Assembly (NCBI RefSeq): GCF_006345805.1
Contig: NC_043019.1
Coordinates: 25,915,360 to 25,979,359 of the forward strand
DNA: 64,000 nt
DNA from: Octopus sinensis
Taxonomy: Eukaryota
Direction of reading: 5' to 3'
In this document: piece after piece, positions 21,104-63,772 of the stretch
Layout: each line of letters starts with the position of its first letter
Numbering within the stretch: position 1 is the stretch's first letter
Position numbers and translations under genes: made by a program
The notes under the pieces: generated by a model
The model's database searches: none
Told to the model about the DNA's origin: nothing
Seen by the model: only the letters and a program-made list of their open reading frames with translations

Positions 21104-21244
21104 ATTGTCCTGATCAAAATGAACATTGTCCTTATTGGGCCGATAACGGTGAATGTGACAAGAGCCCTAAATACATGTATTACAACTGTAAGAAATCTTG
21201 TCAATTGTGTGACTCCCCGCCTCCCAATCCAGAAGTAATGGAAA
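21104..21244 (+). CDS. Gene A ShKT exon 2 (CPDQNEHCPYWADNGECDKSPKYMYYNCKKSCQLC + linker)
   Basis: GATTTCAG acceptor, GTAAGT donor, 141 nt, phase 1-1, intact ShKT cysteine pattern. Confidence 0.92.
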
Positions 21245-21959
21245 GTAAGTTTATCTTTGGCTACTTCTACTTGGTTGACAGTCACATTTCTTGCTCCACC
21301 CGCTTTCTACTTTTCTTTCTTTTTTGAAAAGTAACGAGATATTTATAAACAAAATGTAATAGTGACACCCTCCAAATATTTCATAACGAAGGGAATTTTA
21401 CAAATGGCCGTTGGGATTGGCCTTGGTTTGGTAATGGTGGGTAGATTACTCGGAGTTCCTCGCAAGCAGTGGGTGTTAAGCTTTTCATCATTCTCCAAAA
21501 TGTGTGTGTTTTTTCGCGCAACTTGAATAGAAAATATCCCGTTTTCTTTCGTTATCCCCTTACAAAAACAAATTTTGAAATTACGCCCTCGGGGAGAATC
21601 CAACAGGTGTAAAACCACACAGGTATTTTCTCTTTAATATAATATGAATGATGAAATGGCACCGAGCCGGCAGTATCGTCAAAACACAGGGAGAAATGCT
21701 TAACAGCATTTCGTTTGTTTTTACCTTTTCAATTCCAATTTTGCCGAGGTTCATGTTGCTTTCTTCCATTCGGCGTCGTCAAAGGAACTATCAATTGAAT
21801 TCTCGTGTCGATGTAATTGACTTATCCCAACCATCGAAATTATGTGCCTTGTGTTAAATTTGAAACCATGCGCGGCGGACTTACATGCGGAGCAGTTTGC
21901 ATGCATCGGGGGCTGGCATGCGTAGCGTTTTGCAACATGCAGCATACAGCGCCATGCCA

Positions 21960-22400
21960 TTTGTTCTTTCCAGATATCTAATATTTTCCTGATTATTCTG
22001 GCTGTTCCAATTAGTCAAACCTCTTGTACAATTTCTACTGGGTACCCTATTCTGATTTTCTTCAAATTCCCCTTGATTCCTTCTGTTGCTTTCAACAATA
22101 ACTGGCACTATCTTCACCTTCTTGCTTTACTATAACCAAGCTATTTCCTACATAAAATGATTGTATATAGATGTAATTTTTCGCCTTCTTTCTTCACTAT
22201 TTTTATGTCAAATTAGAAGACAACATCAACTATATATCACATGTGGTGCTTCTTGTCCACCACAATTATGTCCCTTCTTTATTGCACTTGCACCTGATCT
22301 GTTTGGAATGGAAGATTCAGAGGTTTTTGCAGGATTCACACTCCACCACTCTCTGAGGCTTGGTTTCATACCACGTCTTGTCTCTCTCTAACACCCACAC
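21960..22400 (-). mobile_element. R4/Dong-like LINE 3' (REL endonuclease) fragment; homologous copies at 25955-26405 and 60350-60785
   Basis: Minus-strand VKIVPVIV...IGTARIIRK-type C-terminus; three copies share the same breakpoints and the preceding GCATGC/TGCAGCC tract. Confidence 0.7.
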
Positions 22401-22993
22401 TATTATCATTATAATTATTAACCTTATTATTATTATTATTATCATTATCATTATCATTATTACTATTATTATTATTATTATTATTATTATTATTATTATT
22501 ATAGGCGCAGGAATGGCTGTGTGGTAAGTAGCTTGCTTACCGACATCATGGTTTCGGGTTCAGTCCCACTGCGTGGCACCTTGGGCAAGTGTCTTCTACT
22601 ATAGCCTCTGGCCGACCGATGCCTTGTGAGTGGATTTGGTAGATGGAAACTGAAAGAAGCTCGTCGTATATATTTATGTATGTGCGTTTATATGTTTGTG
22701 TGTCTGTGTTCGTCCCCCCAACGTTGCCTGACAACCGATGTTGGTGTGTTTACGTCCCCGTAACTTCGCGGTTCGGCAGAAGAAACCGATAGAATTAGTA
22801 CTAAGCTTACTAAGAATAAGTCCTGGTGTCGATTTGCACGACTACAGGCGGTGCTCCAGCATGGCTGATGTCAAATAACTGAAACATGTGAAAGAGTAAA
22901 AGAGTAAAGAGTTATTATTATTAGTGTTGCTGTTGTTCTTGTTCCTGTTGTTATCAATATTATTGTTATTGCTGTTTTTCTGGTCGATTTCAG

Positions 22994-61900: not shown

Positions 61901-62166
61901 TATGATGCTCCCCCACTACTTCTGCTCGTGATCAGAGATGCACATATCGTCAGCCACTAAGGGACATGCTCAACTGGTTAAGGTCAAACAACTGACAAGC
62001 AAATCTGTGGTATTGAGCAGAATATTTGCTGTAGCCCATCTTATTATTATTATTATTATTATTATTATTATTATTATTATTATTATTATTATTATTATTA
62101 TTATTATATTATTATTATTATTATTATTATTATTATTATTATTGTGACTGTTGTTGTTGATTTCAG

Positions 62167-62307
62167 ATTGTCGTGATGAAAATGTTGATTGTCGTTACTG
62201 GGCCGCTACCGGAGAATGTAAAACTAGTGCAGAGTTCATGAATAAAGAATGTAGGAAATCTTGTCAGTTGTGTAAGTCCATGCACCAAACTCAACCAGCA
62301 GTTGATG
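62167..62307 (+). CDS. Gene B exon 3: ShKT domain CRDENVDCRYWAATGECKTSAEFMNKECRKSCQLC + KSMHQTQPAVD linker
   Basis: GATTTCAG acceptor, ATG|GTAAGT donor, 141 nt, phase 1-1, intact cysteine pattern. Confidence 0.92.
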
Positions 62308-63772
62308 GTAAGTTTACCTTTGGATTCTTCTACCCGGTTGTCATTCACTTTTCCTGCTCCACCCGTTTTCTACTGTTGTTTCATTTAAGAAGTAACGAGA
62401 TATTTATAAACAAAATGTAACAGAAACACCCTCCAGCTATTTCATAGCGAAGGGAATTTTACAAATGGCCGTTGGGATTGGCCTTGATTTGGGAATGGTG
62501 GGTAGATTACTCGGAGTTTCTCGCAAGCCACGGGGTGGGTGTATGTGTGTGTGTGTGTGTGTGTGTGTGTGTAAAACTTGAACGGCAAAAATCCCATTTT
62601 ATTTCATTTTCTTCTTATGATAAAAATATGTTCACACCACGCCCTCGGAGAGAAACCAACAGGTGTAAAACCACACAGGTATTCTCTCTTTAATATATGA
62701 ATAATGGTAGAGAGGCAGGTTGGATGACTCGTTAGCATGCCAGGCAAAACGCTCGGCGGCATTTCGTTCATCTTTAAGATCTGAGTTCAAACTCCGCCGA
62801 GGTCGATATTGCCTTTCATCCTTTCGGGGTCAATAAAACATGTACCAGTGGTCAATGCAATTGATTTAACCCCACCGCCACCAGAAGTTGCTGGCCTTCT
62901 GCCAAAATTTCAAAACCATTACTATTATTATTATTATTATATTATTATTATTATTATTATTATTATTATTACTATTATTATTATTATCATTATTATTATT
63001 ATTATTATTATTATTATTATTATTATTATTATTATTATTATTATTATTATTGAGTGAGAGAGCAGCGCATGCCATCAAAGTGACACTGGATTAAAATATA
63101 CGAAGCCCAGTATACCCATCATAACCACCCGTCTGATAAGGGTACACCAGGCACATGCATCACAACCATATGTGCGCGACATGGTGATCTCATATCAAGG
63201 TAAACAGCGCATGACCTTGCAGGTGGGGCCCAGTTAGAATTTTCTTCAGGTCGAGTAGCCCATCCCGCTCAAAATGTCCCTGAATAAGGGTTGTTTAAGG
63301 ATGTTGAAAGAACCACCCATGTTTCCAGAGGTGAATTATTCAAACCCCAAAGAATCCCTCTCAACACATGGCTATGATGCTCCCCTGCTACTTCTGCTCG
63401 TGATCAGAGATGCACATATCGTCAGCCACTAAGGGACATGATCAACTGGTTAAGGTCAAACAACTGACAAGCAAATCTCTGGTATTGAGCAGAATATTTG
63501 CTGTAGCCCATCTTTTTATACCAAAACAAAATAATGTACATGATAACACTTCCAATCAGTTAAGATCAGAAGCCATGAGAGCCACTGCCTTGTACTGCAT
63601 CAGAGCATTTAGTATTTATTTTTGTTGTTGTGGGTGGTAGTGTTGGTGGTGATGGTGGTGGTGGTGGTGGTGGTGTTATTATTATTATTGTTGTTGTTGT
63701 GGGTGGTAGTGGTGGTGGTGGTGGTGGTGGTGTTATTATTATTATTATTGTTGTTGTTGTTGTTGATTTCAG

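Follow-up and report, generated by a model that had tools for sequence, protein, structure and literature searches.

Domain exons diverge faster than their proximal introns in two genes of an Octopus sinensis ShKT cluster

In a cluster of paralogous Octopus sinensis genes that encode putatively secreted proteins built of ShKT domains only, the domain exons of two genes, B and C, were found to have diverged more than the introns that adjoin them, whereas the exons of a third, gene A, have not. Exon divergence in excess of intron divergence is a rare signature, described so far mainly in snake and cone-snail toxin families, and whether selection, mutation or homogenisation of the introns produces it is a matter of continuing debate. 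The preliminary description of this DNA had proposed toxin-type accelerated evolution. The inversion on which it relied proved to be significant, recurrent and gene-level, but only part of the proposed positive selection was borne out, ω above 1 not being significant with the exon's own synonymous rate. A pattern like that of PLA2 and conotoxin genes is present, and positive selection is plausible and partly supported. Our preferred explanation, held tentatively and with slightly less than even confidence, is that young tandem ShKT units show the inversion for two joint reasons, relaxation or diversification of the exons and retention of the proximal intron.

The window analysed here is a stretch of 64,000 nucleotides (contig NC_043019.1, positions 25,915,360 to 25,979,359); its features are collected in Table 1. 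The cluster is assembled from tandem units, each composed of one symmetrical phase 1-1 exon, which encodes an ShKT domain and a short linker, and an intron of ~1 kb. Gene A has five units (A1-A5). In gene B a putative signal-peptide exon comes first, and four units and a terminal ShKT exon follow; the gene extends beyond the window, where B3, B4 and then the terminal exon with its stop codon are located. Gene C lies on the unplaced contig C6121, which was rejected as a haplotig of gene B, given that its structure differs and that block identities range over 77-96%. Seven ShK-like exons are in the window, three are further downstream, and additional ones are on C6121. All are phase 1-1 and share acceptor and donor; A2 and B1 are both 141 nt long, phase 1-1, with a cag acceptor directly before the exon and a GTAAGT donor directly after it. 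The A1 exon encodes its domain together with a Pro-rich linker of 11 codons, and a linker deletion has left the B2 exon with only 111 nt. The microsatellite and acceptor seen ahead of B1 recur in the same layout ahead of every unit and act as the pyrimidine tract. No exon 2 of gene B, linking the signal exon to B1, was found by tblastn, ORF scan or enumeration under splice rules, and no first or signal exon of gene A was recognisable in a search reaching up to 10 kb upstream of the window.

Each intron was divided into I1 (proximal, from the donor to a (GT)n run), I2 (the segment past that run) and I3 (the distal part). The 2.7-Gb genome has only ~10 copies of I1, every one of them at the locus or on C6121; I3 belongs to the dispersed repeats and recurs elsewhere in the window (families D17 and D20). 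The I1 of B1 is 88% identical to that of A2 and 90-92% identical to those of B2 and B3. In the A3 intron, homology to the other units covers 48 nt only and is followed by replaced sequence. The B2 unit recurs outside the window, 4.3 kb further downstream, as B4, with 98.8% identity and between unrelated flanks.

Table 1. Features of the ShKT gene cluster (positions are those of the window)
Feature	Position	Strand	Basis
A1, gene A unit 1 exon	20092..20232	+	six-Cys pattern, Pfam PF01549 E = 1.5e-6, splice context
A2, gene A unit 2 exon (gene A exon 2 of the preliminary description)	21104-21244	+	six-Cys pattern, splice context, Pfam ShK E = 6.9e-8
I1 of unit A2, donor to (GT)n run	21245..21500	+	alignments
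I1 after A1, A4 and A5	20233-; 24973-25226; 28033-	+	homologous by alignment
A3, gene A unit 3 exon	22994..23134	+	six-Cys pattern, splice context, alignment
A4, gene A unit 4 exon	24832..24972	+	six-Cys pattern, splice context
A5, gene A unit 5 exon	27892..28032	+	six-Cys pattern, splice context, Pfam ShK
Gene A, degraded homologue of terminal ShKT exon	30718..30808	+	nucleotide identity, translation
Gene B exon 1 CDS, putative 23-residue signal peptide	56722..56790	+	GTAAGT donor next; protein identity to O. bimaculoides A0A0L8HE40 N-terminus
(TTA)n-(TTG)n microsatellite and GATTTCAG acceptor, directly upstream of B1	62037..62166	+	sequence inspection, splice context
B1, gene B first ShKT exon (gene B exon 3 of the preliminary description)	62167-62307	+	six-Cys pattern, splice context, Pfam ShK E = 3.6e-10
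I1 of unit B1, donor to (GT)n	62308..62543	+	alignments
Start of ~0.85-kb B2 unit, copied as B4	63733..64000	+	BLAST 63733-64576 vs 68024-68785 (extended coordinates)
B2, gene B second ShKT exon	63773..63883	+	six-Cys pattern, splice context, Pfam ShK E = 3.2e-9

The ShKT assignment required ~35 residues, six Cys in spacing of the C-x6-C-x8-C-x10-C-x3-C-x2-C type, and a score above the gathering cut-off. The five exons tested against ShK/ShKT (Pfam PF01549) scored 29-41 bits over profile positions 2-37 of 37 (cut-off, 20.9), and the six Cys were in register in 10 of 10 units. The first exon of genes B and C encodes a hydrophobic stretch of 23 residues, and the O. bimaculoides ShKT protein A0A0L8HE40 begins with the same 23 residues. 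Despite this identical signal peptide, the ShKT domains of A0A0L8HE40 are only 51-68% identical to those of the locus, and protein-database searches returned no further octopus orthologues. Between genes B and C, the exon-1 CDS is identical at 69 of 69 nt and its 5′ flank at 113 of 115, and the ShKT exons share ~50% protein identity. Thus a conserved signal exon stands beside hypervariable mature exons, one of the marks of accelerated-evolution families; another, exon divergence greater than intron divergence, was observed as well.

For A2 and B1, the preliminary description had counted about 44 differences in 141 nt, mostly nonsynonymous. Alignment gave exactly 44 of 141 (68.8% identity); the amino acid is altered in 26 of 46 codons, which hold 39 of the 44 differences, and four codons differ only synonymously. 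It was also essentially right that five TGT codons for Cys and a sixth are unchanged, all six being TGT in both exons. The introns that follow (from 21245 and 62308), which had been put at 85-90% identity, showed 27 differences in 225 aligned columns (88%); other estimates were 85% over 241 columns and 88% over 223 nt (BLAST). The A2-B1 contrast between exon and intron is not due to chance, because Fisher's test gave p = 1e-5. Moreover, the contrast is broader and sharper than had been described. The inversion was present in every comparison with B1, B2/B4, B3 or C1, and K between groups was 0.23-0.46 for the exon core vs 0.09-0.23 for I1. Between B1 and B3, identity is 38% over the last 34 exon nt (the linker) and 98% over the first 60 intron nt. 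The B1-B2 inversion also holds against I2 and I3 (32 of 107 vs 46 of 280 positions different).

It could be argued that this contrast arose by chance, from faulty alignment or because a transposable element lends the introns their likeness. I3 of each intron is indeed a dispersed repeat. However, I1 is confined to the locus and C6121 and is contiguous with the donor site, the exons align gap-free with all Cys in register, and Fisher p values for the exon-intron comparisons were 1e-5 to 3e-8. A transposable element was rejected as the source of the intron similarity on the grounds that, with ~10 genome copies of I1, only I3 is dispersed. The artefact reading is effectively refuted, and we give it next to no chance.

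The inversion is lineage-specific, being present in genes B and C and absent from gene A. Gene A copies follow the ordinary pattern: A1 and A2 are 95% identical in the exon and 81% in the intron, and across A1-A4 the exon is less diverged than the intron. All 30 of the 30 Cys codons of gene A, and its frames and splice sites, are intact, although its introns are 13-21% diverged. In contrast, the exons of B1, B3, C1 and B2 have evolved 4-8 times faster than their own introns. Terminal branch lengths for exon and I1 were 0.34 and 0.04 in B1, 0.25 and 0.04 in B3, and 0.33 and 0.08 in C1, with ratios of at most 1:1 in the A units. The preliminary description had further placed the gene A substitutions in the WA-xx and C-xxxx-KY loops, for which we found a trend only: 6 of the 24 positions that vary in the family account for 8 of the 20 core changes (p = 0.10).

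At conserved residues the synonymous divergence of the B/C exons was 0.19 (per codon) and 0.29 (four-fold sites), compared with 0.62 and 0.76, respectively, in distant ShK paralogues of equal protein identity (~51-54%). Their synonymous sites are unsaturated, unlike those of the distant paralogues, and the exons are therefore young; this control ruled out ancient exons. Among B1, B2, B3 and C1, only 1-5 of 13-18 codons for the same amino acid differ. Import of the B1 exon from a distant paralogue was likewise rejected, as no nearer relative was found in the genome (best, 53% amino acid identity).

Rates were then estimated by codon likelihood models in our own implementation, not codeml. The data set was small (8-10 sequences, 46 codons), and any exchange between paralogues would breach the assumptions of the trees used. 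Overall ω was 0.59, with M1a placing 23% of sites at ω 0 and 77% at ω 1. When the exon was given its own synonymous rate, M2a fitted no better than M1a (p = 0.65-0.72). In the branch model, ω was 0.52-0.57 on A branches and 1.27-1.48 on B/C branches, the latter not significantly different from 1 (p = 0.17-0.41). Non-scaffold codons on B/C branches evolved at or above the neutral rate, and linker-specific ω, averaged over the tree, was ~1. The ratio of synonymous to proximal-intron rate was 4.5-6.4 on B/C branches vs 1.6-1.7 on A branches (p = 0.002-0.011), a B/C synonymous rate 3-4 times that of A relative to the intron clock. NG86 pairwise dS (0.3-1.3) leans heavily on multiply-changed codons and was not taken at face value; the likelihood models and the clean-site control were used instead. 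Synonymous rates fitted separately to codons that vary and to those that do not showed no difference, in a comparison that rests on about 6 changes. According to the preliminary description, dS far above intron divergence together with dN/dS well below 1 would speak against its proposal; the synonymous excess came near to the first, and ω stayed at ~1. The raised B/C synonymous rate is not explained by amino-acid selection alone. It needs slowing or homogenisation of the introns, exon hypermutation, or a bias of codon models at multiply-hit codons.

A different outcome was obtained when exon silent sites were placed on the intron clock. Under a single synonymous scaling, ω on B/C branches was 2.4 and exceeded 1 (p = 0.0003-0.0004). 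With the exon synonymous rate tied to that of I2, M2a was better than M1a (p = 0.005; ω 2.3 at 32% of sites), and the tie itself was not rejected (p = 0.06). The youngest pair, B2/B4, differs at 4 of 111 exon positions, 3 of them nonsynonymous, vs 5 of 652 flanking positions (p = 0.03). These results speak for purely toxin-type positive selection, whereby the introns would record the true neutral age of recent duplicates, the exons would have undergone recurrent adaptive replacement, and the silent rise would be a by-product of repeated replacements in the same codon. The few differing codons for the same amino acid, the complete (100%) conservation of the signal exon, and the comparable pattern reported for toxin genes of cone snails and snakes (Wu et al. 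2013, PMC3862624; Doley et al. 2008, PMC2474615) are in line with it. On the other hand, the standard site tests were null, and a lineage-varying synonymous rate fitted better, leaving ω at ~1.3-1.5, not significantly above 1. The most diverged part is the linker (38-50% identity), an improbable target of selection, and young duplicates in other ShK clusters have no exon excess. Furthermore, I1 (the proximal 250 nt) evolves 1.7-2.1 times more slowly than I2 (p = 0.0002) and is therefore no neutral yardstick. We consider selection as the whole explanation unlikely.

The sharp steps in divergence at both splice junctions, and linkers near random-level identity yet equal in length, could instead point to mutation directed at the exons, by a conotoxin-style mutator or ASSET-like replacement, with all substitution types elevated and selection then keeping only the cysteine scaffold. 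This would agree with the fast branches, where ω is ~1 and synonymous change is elevated, and comparable proposals are found in the literature (PMC2474615, PMC3862624). Yet gene A exons, in the same array and with the same flanks, are not accelerated, nor are young duplicates of other ShK clusters, and the ~6 synonymous changes at invariant residues are too few to prove a rise in mutation rate. Exon-directed mutation thus appears very unlikely. A wider formulation, to which we would assign a small probability, is that the B/C ShKT exons were rewritten at silent and replacement sites alike by an exon-confined process after recent tandem duplication, with the signal exon and proximal introns nearly untouched. 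Such a process might be ASSET-like segment replacement, or else strong diversifying selection joined by a mutational contribution. If true, cephalopods would have arrived independently at the conotoxin/PLA2 mode of gene evolution, at the level of domains inside a single multi-domain gene.

The conservation of I1 was also considered in its own right. Identity with rising distance from the exon was 98, 94, 87 and 88%. No known element or structured RNA was found that accounts for it: there was no credible Rfam hit, the fold z-score was +0.35, and the covariation term of the alignment was -0.05. These three results being negative, an miRNA or snoRNA hosted by I1 was rejected; coding by read-through was judged improbable, in that the units differ by indels whose lengths are not divisible by three and A1 is locally divergent.

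The alternative named in the preliminary description was gene conversion of the introns. In the form considered here, conversion or unequal exchange would keep the introns and signal exon alike around B/C exons older than those introns suggest, and its tracts would stop wherever exon divergence prevents pairing. Recent copying between units was observed. A 0.85-kb copy from B2 to B4 shows that exchange is active, and A1 and A4 are 93-96% identical in the repeat-derived distal intron vs 74-92% in the proximal part; between genes B and C, the exon-1 block is 96% identical and adjoins a block of 77%. I1 distances level off at 0.09-0.23 regardless of exon distance, I1 is bounded by the exon and the (GT)n run with I2 beyond it 1.7-2 times more diverged, incompatibility affects 34-48% of the informative site pairs in the intron, and on B/C branches exon changes of either kind, synonymous and nonsynonymous, outpace the introns. 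Mosaic tracts or clustered incompatibility were, however, not found in the introns by tests of limited power (17-37 informative sites): PHI gave p = 0.21 for I1 and 0.40 for I1 and I2, and the best global p of Sawyer-type longest runs was 0.09-0.16. Singletons make up 54 of the 71 variable I1 sites, which is star-like and not mosaic, and identity peaks beside the exon and then decays, opposite to what tracts halting short of the exon would leave. Separate tracts would be needed at both borders of each 141-nt exon, in several units; moreover, the exons are not ancient, and ω would still be ~0.7-1, far above the long-term level of the family. Homogenised introns around older exons therefore strike us as rather doubtful, though not negligible, as the main cause.

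The explanation that we prefer, with its two causes, starts from units that are young products of tandem duplication. Gene A copies still evolve conventionally (ω ~0.5, exons more alike than introns). Outside the cysteine scaffold, hardly a codon in the domain exons of genes B and C has escaped change, and the signal exon, splice sites and first 125-250 nt of each intron have stayed nearly identical. What we infer concerns the selective cause, the reason for intron conservation and any toxin function. First, the non-scaffold residues of redundant domains may evolve at the neutral rate or a little faster, through relaxed constraint and probable diversifying selection like that of toxin families. 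Second, the splice-proximal intron may be kept similar either by constraint or by exchange that halts at diverged exons. Constraint could be of the kind typical of regulated cassette exons. In vertebrate comparative genomics, alternatively spliced cassette exons are symmetrical, and ~100-150 nt of their flanking intron are more conserved than the rest. The octopus exons are likewise symmetrical, with adjacent intron more conserved than the remainder; the vertebrate rule, however, concerns orthologues between species, and the conservation seen here is among paralogous units. Normal (gene A) and inverted (genes B and C) units with identical splice sites and flanks make the locus a compact natural experiment, and orthologous loci and transcripts could therefore separate selection, mutation and intron homogenisation.

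Accelerated evolution, including ASSET, has been described for snake venom PLA2 and three-finger toxin genes (Doley et al. 2008). As in those genes, introns at the octopus locus are more alike than coding exons, Ka is similar to Ks with both above intron divergence, and short exon segments have changed almost beyond recognition amid conserved flanks, with the cysteine scaffold retained. Unlike them, the octopus units are exons within one multi-domain gene and between paralogous genes, and the locus has an ShKT fold, belongs to a cephalopod and gives no demonstrated ω above 1. Conotoxin families have a highly conserved signal exon and introns (84-99%) and a hypervariable mature-peptide exon (Wu et al. 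2013); conserved Cys codons, introns rich in simple repeats and a mollusc host are further likenesses. In contrast, a conotoxin gene encodes one mature peptide and its site tests usually give ω above 1, whereas the octopus site tests do not and its genes string together four to six domains, joined by linkers that lack dibasic processing sites. For mollusc ShKT proteins, Gerdol et al. (2019, PMC6409789) reported frequent domain and gene duplication, with up to four repeats in O. bimaculoides. Tandem arrays of six-Cys ShKT domains are shared with the locus, but the proteins in that study are mostly joined to CAP, astacin or other catalytic domains, and the genes of the octopus locus are ShKT-only. 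That paper makes no mention of introns or positive selection and does not treat exon and intron rates; a literature search found no paper on octopus ShKT-only genes. The locus marks the octopus ShKT-only proteins, which are putatively secreted, as candidate fast-evolving secretions.

Two further features of the cluster were also recorded. K+-channel-blocking toxins of the ShK type are defined by a functional Lys-Tyr pair that occludes the channel, together with proven block. Such a pair at core positions 22-23 (equivalence of position being by alignment only) is present in A1-A5 and in B2/B4, and is replaced by Glu-Phe in B1, the most divergent unit, by Ser-Tyr in B3 and by Ala-Tyr in C1. The relic of a terminal exon in gene A retains 67-70% nucleotide identity to the terminal-exon region of gene B; it carries TAG in place of a Trp codon, an internal deletion and more stops.

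Seven exons, each encoding a single six-cysteine domain, were found on the plus strand of the window, belonging to the ShKT-only paralogues gene A and gene B, and the exons tested all scored higher than the Pfam gathering threshold for PF01549 (ShK domain-like). The acceptor ...GATTTCAG lies directly before every ShKT exon and GTAAGT directly after it, the phase being 1-1. Six of the seven are 141 nt long, comprising a 35-codon ShKT core and an 11-codon linker; the 111-nt B2 exon, like that of B4, lacks the 30-nt linker, and its last Cys codon is followed by one codon more and then the GTAAGT donor. 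Gene B runs on past the window end with B3 and B4, then a terminal ShKT exon closing with a stop codon. Gene C, on an unplaced 32-kb contig (C6121; L014, L049-L051), has the same signal exon as gene B and, in addition, three ShKT exons: a poly-Gly stretch follows the first kind, another is terminal-like, and downstream of the latter lies C1, which carries the typical unit intron. In B3, Leu-Thr stands in place of the conserved Trp-Ala (CAFLTSIGDC).

Positions of features in and around the ShKT locus (window coordinates unless prefixed; L012 is the downstream extension of the window)
Feature	Position	Strand	Remarks
Gene A exons A1-A5	20092-28032	+	six-Cys domain exons
A3 intron	23135-24800		48 nt homologous to other unit introns; beyond, unrelated sequence including dispersed repeats
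Gene A terminal-exon homologue	30718-30808		broken: TAG at Trp codon, internal deletion, more stops
Gene B exon 1	56722-56790	+	23-residue hydrophobic N-terminus
GTAAGT donor of gene B exon 1	56791-56796		
Gene B exon B1	start 62167	+	first exon of ShKT part
Gene B exon B2	63773-63883	+	second exon of ShKT part
Gene B exon B4	L012:4064-4174		
B2 unit / B4 copy	63733-64576 / L012:4024-4785		0.85 kb, 98.8% identical, flanks unrelated; B2 unit runs past the window end (64000)
(TTA)n-(TTG)n microsatellite	e.g. 21040-21103, 62037-62166		pyrimidine tract 5' of each ShKT exon
SINE-like repeat	48518, 60019		other copies form distal part of each unit intron
Dispersed element, ~430 nt	7308-7755, 18461-18746, 22501-22912, 37379-37785, 49121-49516		copies 75-96% identical; several also on C6121
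9-nt period repeat arrays	~38914-39774		long arrays
Second large ShK-exon cluster	C3:89.836-89.918 Mb		L019, L023, L025-L029, L032

The preliminary description had proposed, from manual counts, that exons at this locus diverge faster than the adjacent introns. This was confirmed, and the contrast is stronger than was stated there. Between A2 and B1, the count of exon differences is exactly 44 in 141 nt, as had been estimated, and the changes are indeed mostly non-synonymous: an amino acid is altered in 26 of 46 codons, which contain 39 of the 44 differences, and 4 codons carry synonymous changes only. The Cys codons, described as unchanged, are TGT at six of six positions in both exons. The introns that follow, put at 85-90% identity, show 88% identity across 225 aligned columns (BLAST: 88% over 223 nt). 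A dispersed repeat as the source of this likeness was ruled out, because the intron sequence has only about 10 genomic copies, all in the array or on C6121. Given these counts, the exon-intron difference in divergence (Fisher p = 1e-5) and the restriction of the intron to the locus, the observation stands.

The comparison was extended to 10 units (A1-A5, B1-B4, and C1). In every between-group comparison, exon-core K was 0.23-0.46, with 17-21 differences in the 34-nt linker, and K of the proximal intron I1 (the first ~250 nt, closed in each intron by a (GT)n run) was 0.09-0.23. The linkers of B1 and B3 are 38% identical, with a sharp step at the donor; their introns are 98% identical over the first 60 nt, and thereafter 94%, 87%, and 88%. 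A1-A4 show the usual pattern, with exon K (0.06-0.17) below intron K (0.13-0.21). Terminal branches for exon and I1, respectively, were 0.34 and 0.04 for B1, 0.25 and 0.04 for B3, and 0.33 and 0.08 for C1, as against 0.05 and 0.11 for A1, 0.00 and 0.07 for A2, and 0.08 and 0.06 for A4. Between genes B and C, the 69-nt signal-peptide coding sequence is identical, the 5' flank matches at 113 of 115 nt and the start of intron 1 at 157 of 165, and the ShKT exons share ~50% protein identity. No exon excess was seen in three pairs of young duplicates from the ShK clusters on contigs C3 and C30, where exon and flank differences were 2/143 and 23/2936 (L019/L027), 0/143 and 10/2925 (L033/L034), and 11/143 and 74/1140 (L025/L032). 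The inversion therefore characterises this locus's B and C units and not the ShK family at large. The C3 cluster includes a ~68.7-kb segmental duplication of ~98% identity, and ShK exons with in-frame stops also occur on contigs C30 and C1.

The idea of old exons with homogenised introns was examined at silent sites. Nei-Gojobori dS for between-group pairs was 0.3-1.3, far over intron K; these values are driven mostly by codons with two or three changes, and we therefore counted only codons encoding the same amino acid in both exons. At such sites, local between-group pairs had 0.19 differences per degenerate codon and 0.29 at four-fold sites. Control exons from the C3 and C30 clusters, with no intron similarity to the locus, were saturated against local exons, with 0.62 differences per codon and a four-fold-site value of 0.76, at the same protein identity (51% versus 54%). 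The local units are thus really young, roughly of the age that their introns suggest, with the protein divergence of ancient paralogues, and the extreme form of the homogenisation explanation is excluded.

Codon likelihoods were obtained with self-written GY94 and MG94 models. For the exon only (10 sequences), M0 gave omega 0.59 and M1a gave omega 0 at 23% and omega 1 at 77% of sites; M2a (omega 1.7 at 25% of sites) was not better than M1a (2dlnL = 0.67, p = 0.72). In joint models, with branch lengths common to exon codons, I1, and the next intron segment I2, I2 evolved at 1.7-2.1 times (p = 0.0002) and exon synonymous sites at 3.1-3.7 times the I1 rate. Equality of the synonymous and I1 rates was rejected (2dlnL = 29-36); under M2a, equality with I2 could not be rejected (p = 0.06), and once the synonymous rate was tied to I2, M2a beat M1a (p = 0.005), with 32% of sites at omega 2.3. 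The hypotheses were best told apart by branch models. On A branches, the synonymous rate was 1.6-1.7 times that of I1 (equal to I2) with omega 0.52-0.57, versus 4.5-6.4 times with omega 1.27-1.48 on B/C branches (against 1: p = 0.17-0.41); the scaling differed between them at p = 0.002 and 0.011 under two topologies. When a single scaling was imposed, B/C omega was 2.4, exceeding 1 at p = 0.0003-0.0004. Thus, on the fast branches silent and replacement changes both outrun the intron clock, with omega ~1 or slightly higher.

These data support fast evolution of the B and C exon proteins, at omega ~1 or more, against ~0.5 for gene A and far lower values over the family's long term. The contrast is also partly due to an unusually conserved proximal intron, with silent sites raised too. 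The toxin-like accelerated evolution suggested earlier is accordingly partly supported: the fast B/C proteins and young units agree with it, but positive selection was not demonstrated. The proposed concentration of substitutions among gene A copies in two loops was a trend only (8 of 20 changes, p = 0.10). In classical snake PLA2 work, Ka was reportedly about equal to Ks and above K of introns; the B/C branches resemble this pattern rather than a clean omega > 1 signal.

The likeness of the introns could reflect constraint or intron-limited homogenisation. Structured RNA was not indicated in I1, where Rfam hits were weak and in low-complexity sequence (fold z-score +0.35, covariation term -0.05). 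Discrete conversion tracts were not detected by PHI (p = 0.21 and 0.40) or by a Sawyer-type runs test (best global p 0.09-0.16), and singletons account for 54 of the 71 variable sites in I1, as expected of a star-like radiation. Intron identity peaks beside the exon and declines over ~125 nt, which fits splice-proximal constraint better than conversion tracts forced to stop before the exon; at the distal border, divergence doubles past the (GT)n run. Exchange between units does occur at the locus, as the B4 copy of the B2 unit indicates; this copy reflects duplication or conversion in recent time, or else a duplication made in the assembly, and its exon holds 4 of the 9 differences (4/111 versus 5/652 in the flanks, p = 0.03).

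In conotoxin genes, the signal exon and introns are conserved (84-99% within a superfamily) and the mature-peptide exon is hypervariable (PMC3862624); in the three-finger toxin genes of viperids, introns are highly similar and exon segments are switched to unrelated sequence, termed ASSET (PMC2474615). The locus thus adds a further case to a type of pattern already known, and what is unusual about it is that the diverging units are exons within one multi-domain gene. In molluscs, ShKT proteins are noted for duplication of domains and genes, with exon and intron rates unexamined (PMC6409789), and nothing on octopus ShKT-only genes was found in the literature.

The N-terminus encoded by gene B exon 1 is identical to that of O. 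bimaculoides A0A0L8HE40 (310 residues, 4 ShKT domains), the sole annotated relative found. Nothing better than the present locus matched this protein elsewhere in the O. sinensis genome (2.72 Gb searched), and its ShKT domains share no more than 51-68% identity with those of the locus. Since exon 1 ends in phase 0 and B1 starts in phase 1, a connecting exon must exist; tblastn, ORF scanning, and splice-rule enumeration found none. Residues 24-25 of the A0A0L8HE40 model, 'VS' after the signal peptide, correspond to the translated GTAAGT donor of exon 1, and residues 26-97 had no match within the locus; in that model the junction of exons 1 and 2 may therefore be annotated wrongly, or the propeptide exon may have diverged strongly. 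For gene A, no signal-exon copy of the B/C type was found up to 10 kb upstream of the window, and the terminal-exon homologue is broken; in A1-A5, all Cys codons are retained, and the frames and splice sites are intact. The gene may begin and end with different exons, or it may be a recently disabled gene. At window positions 38000-42000, GC skew is strong (+0.49 at 38-40 kb).
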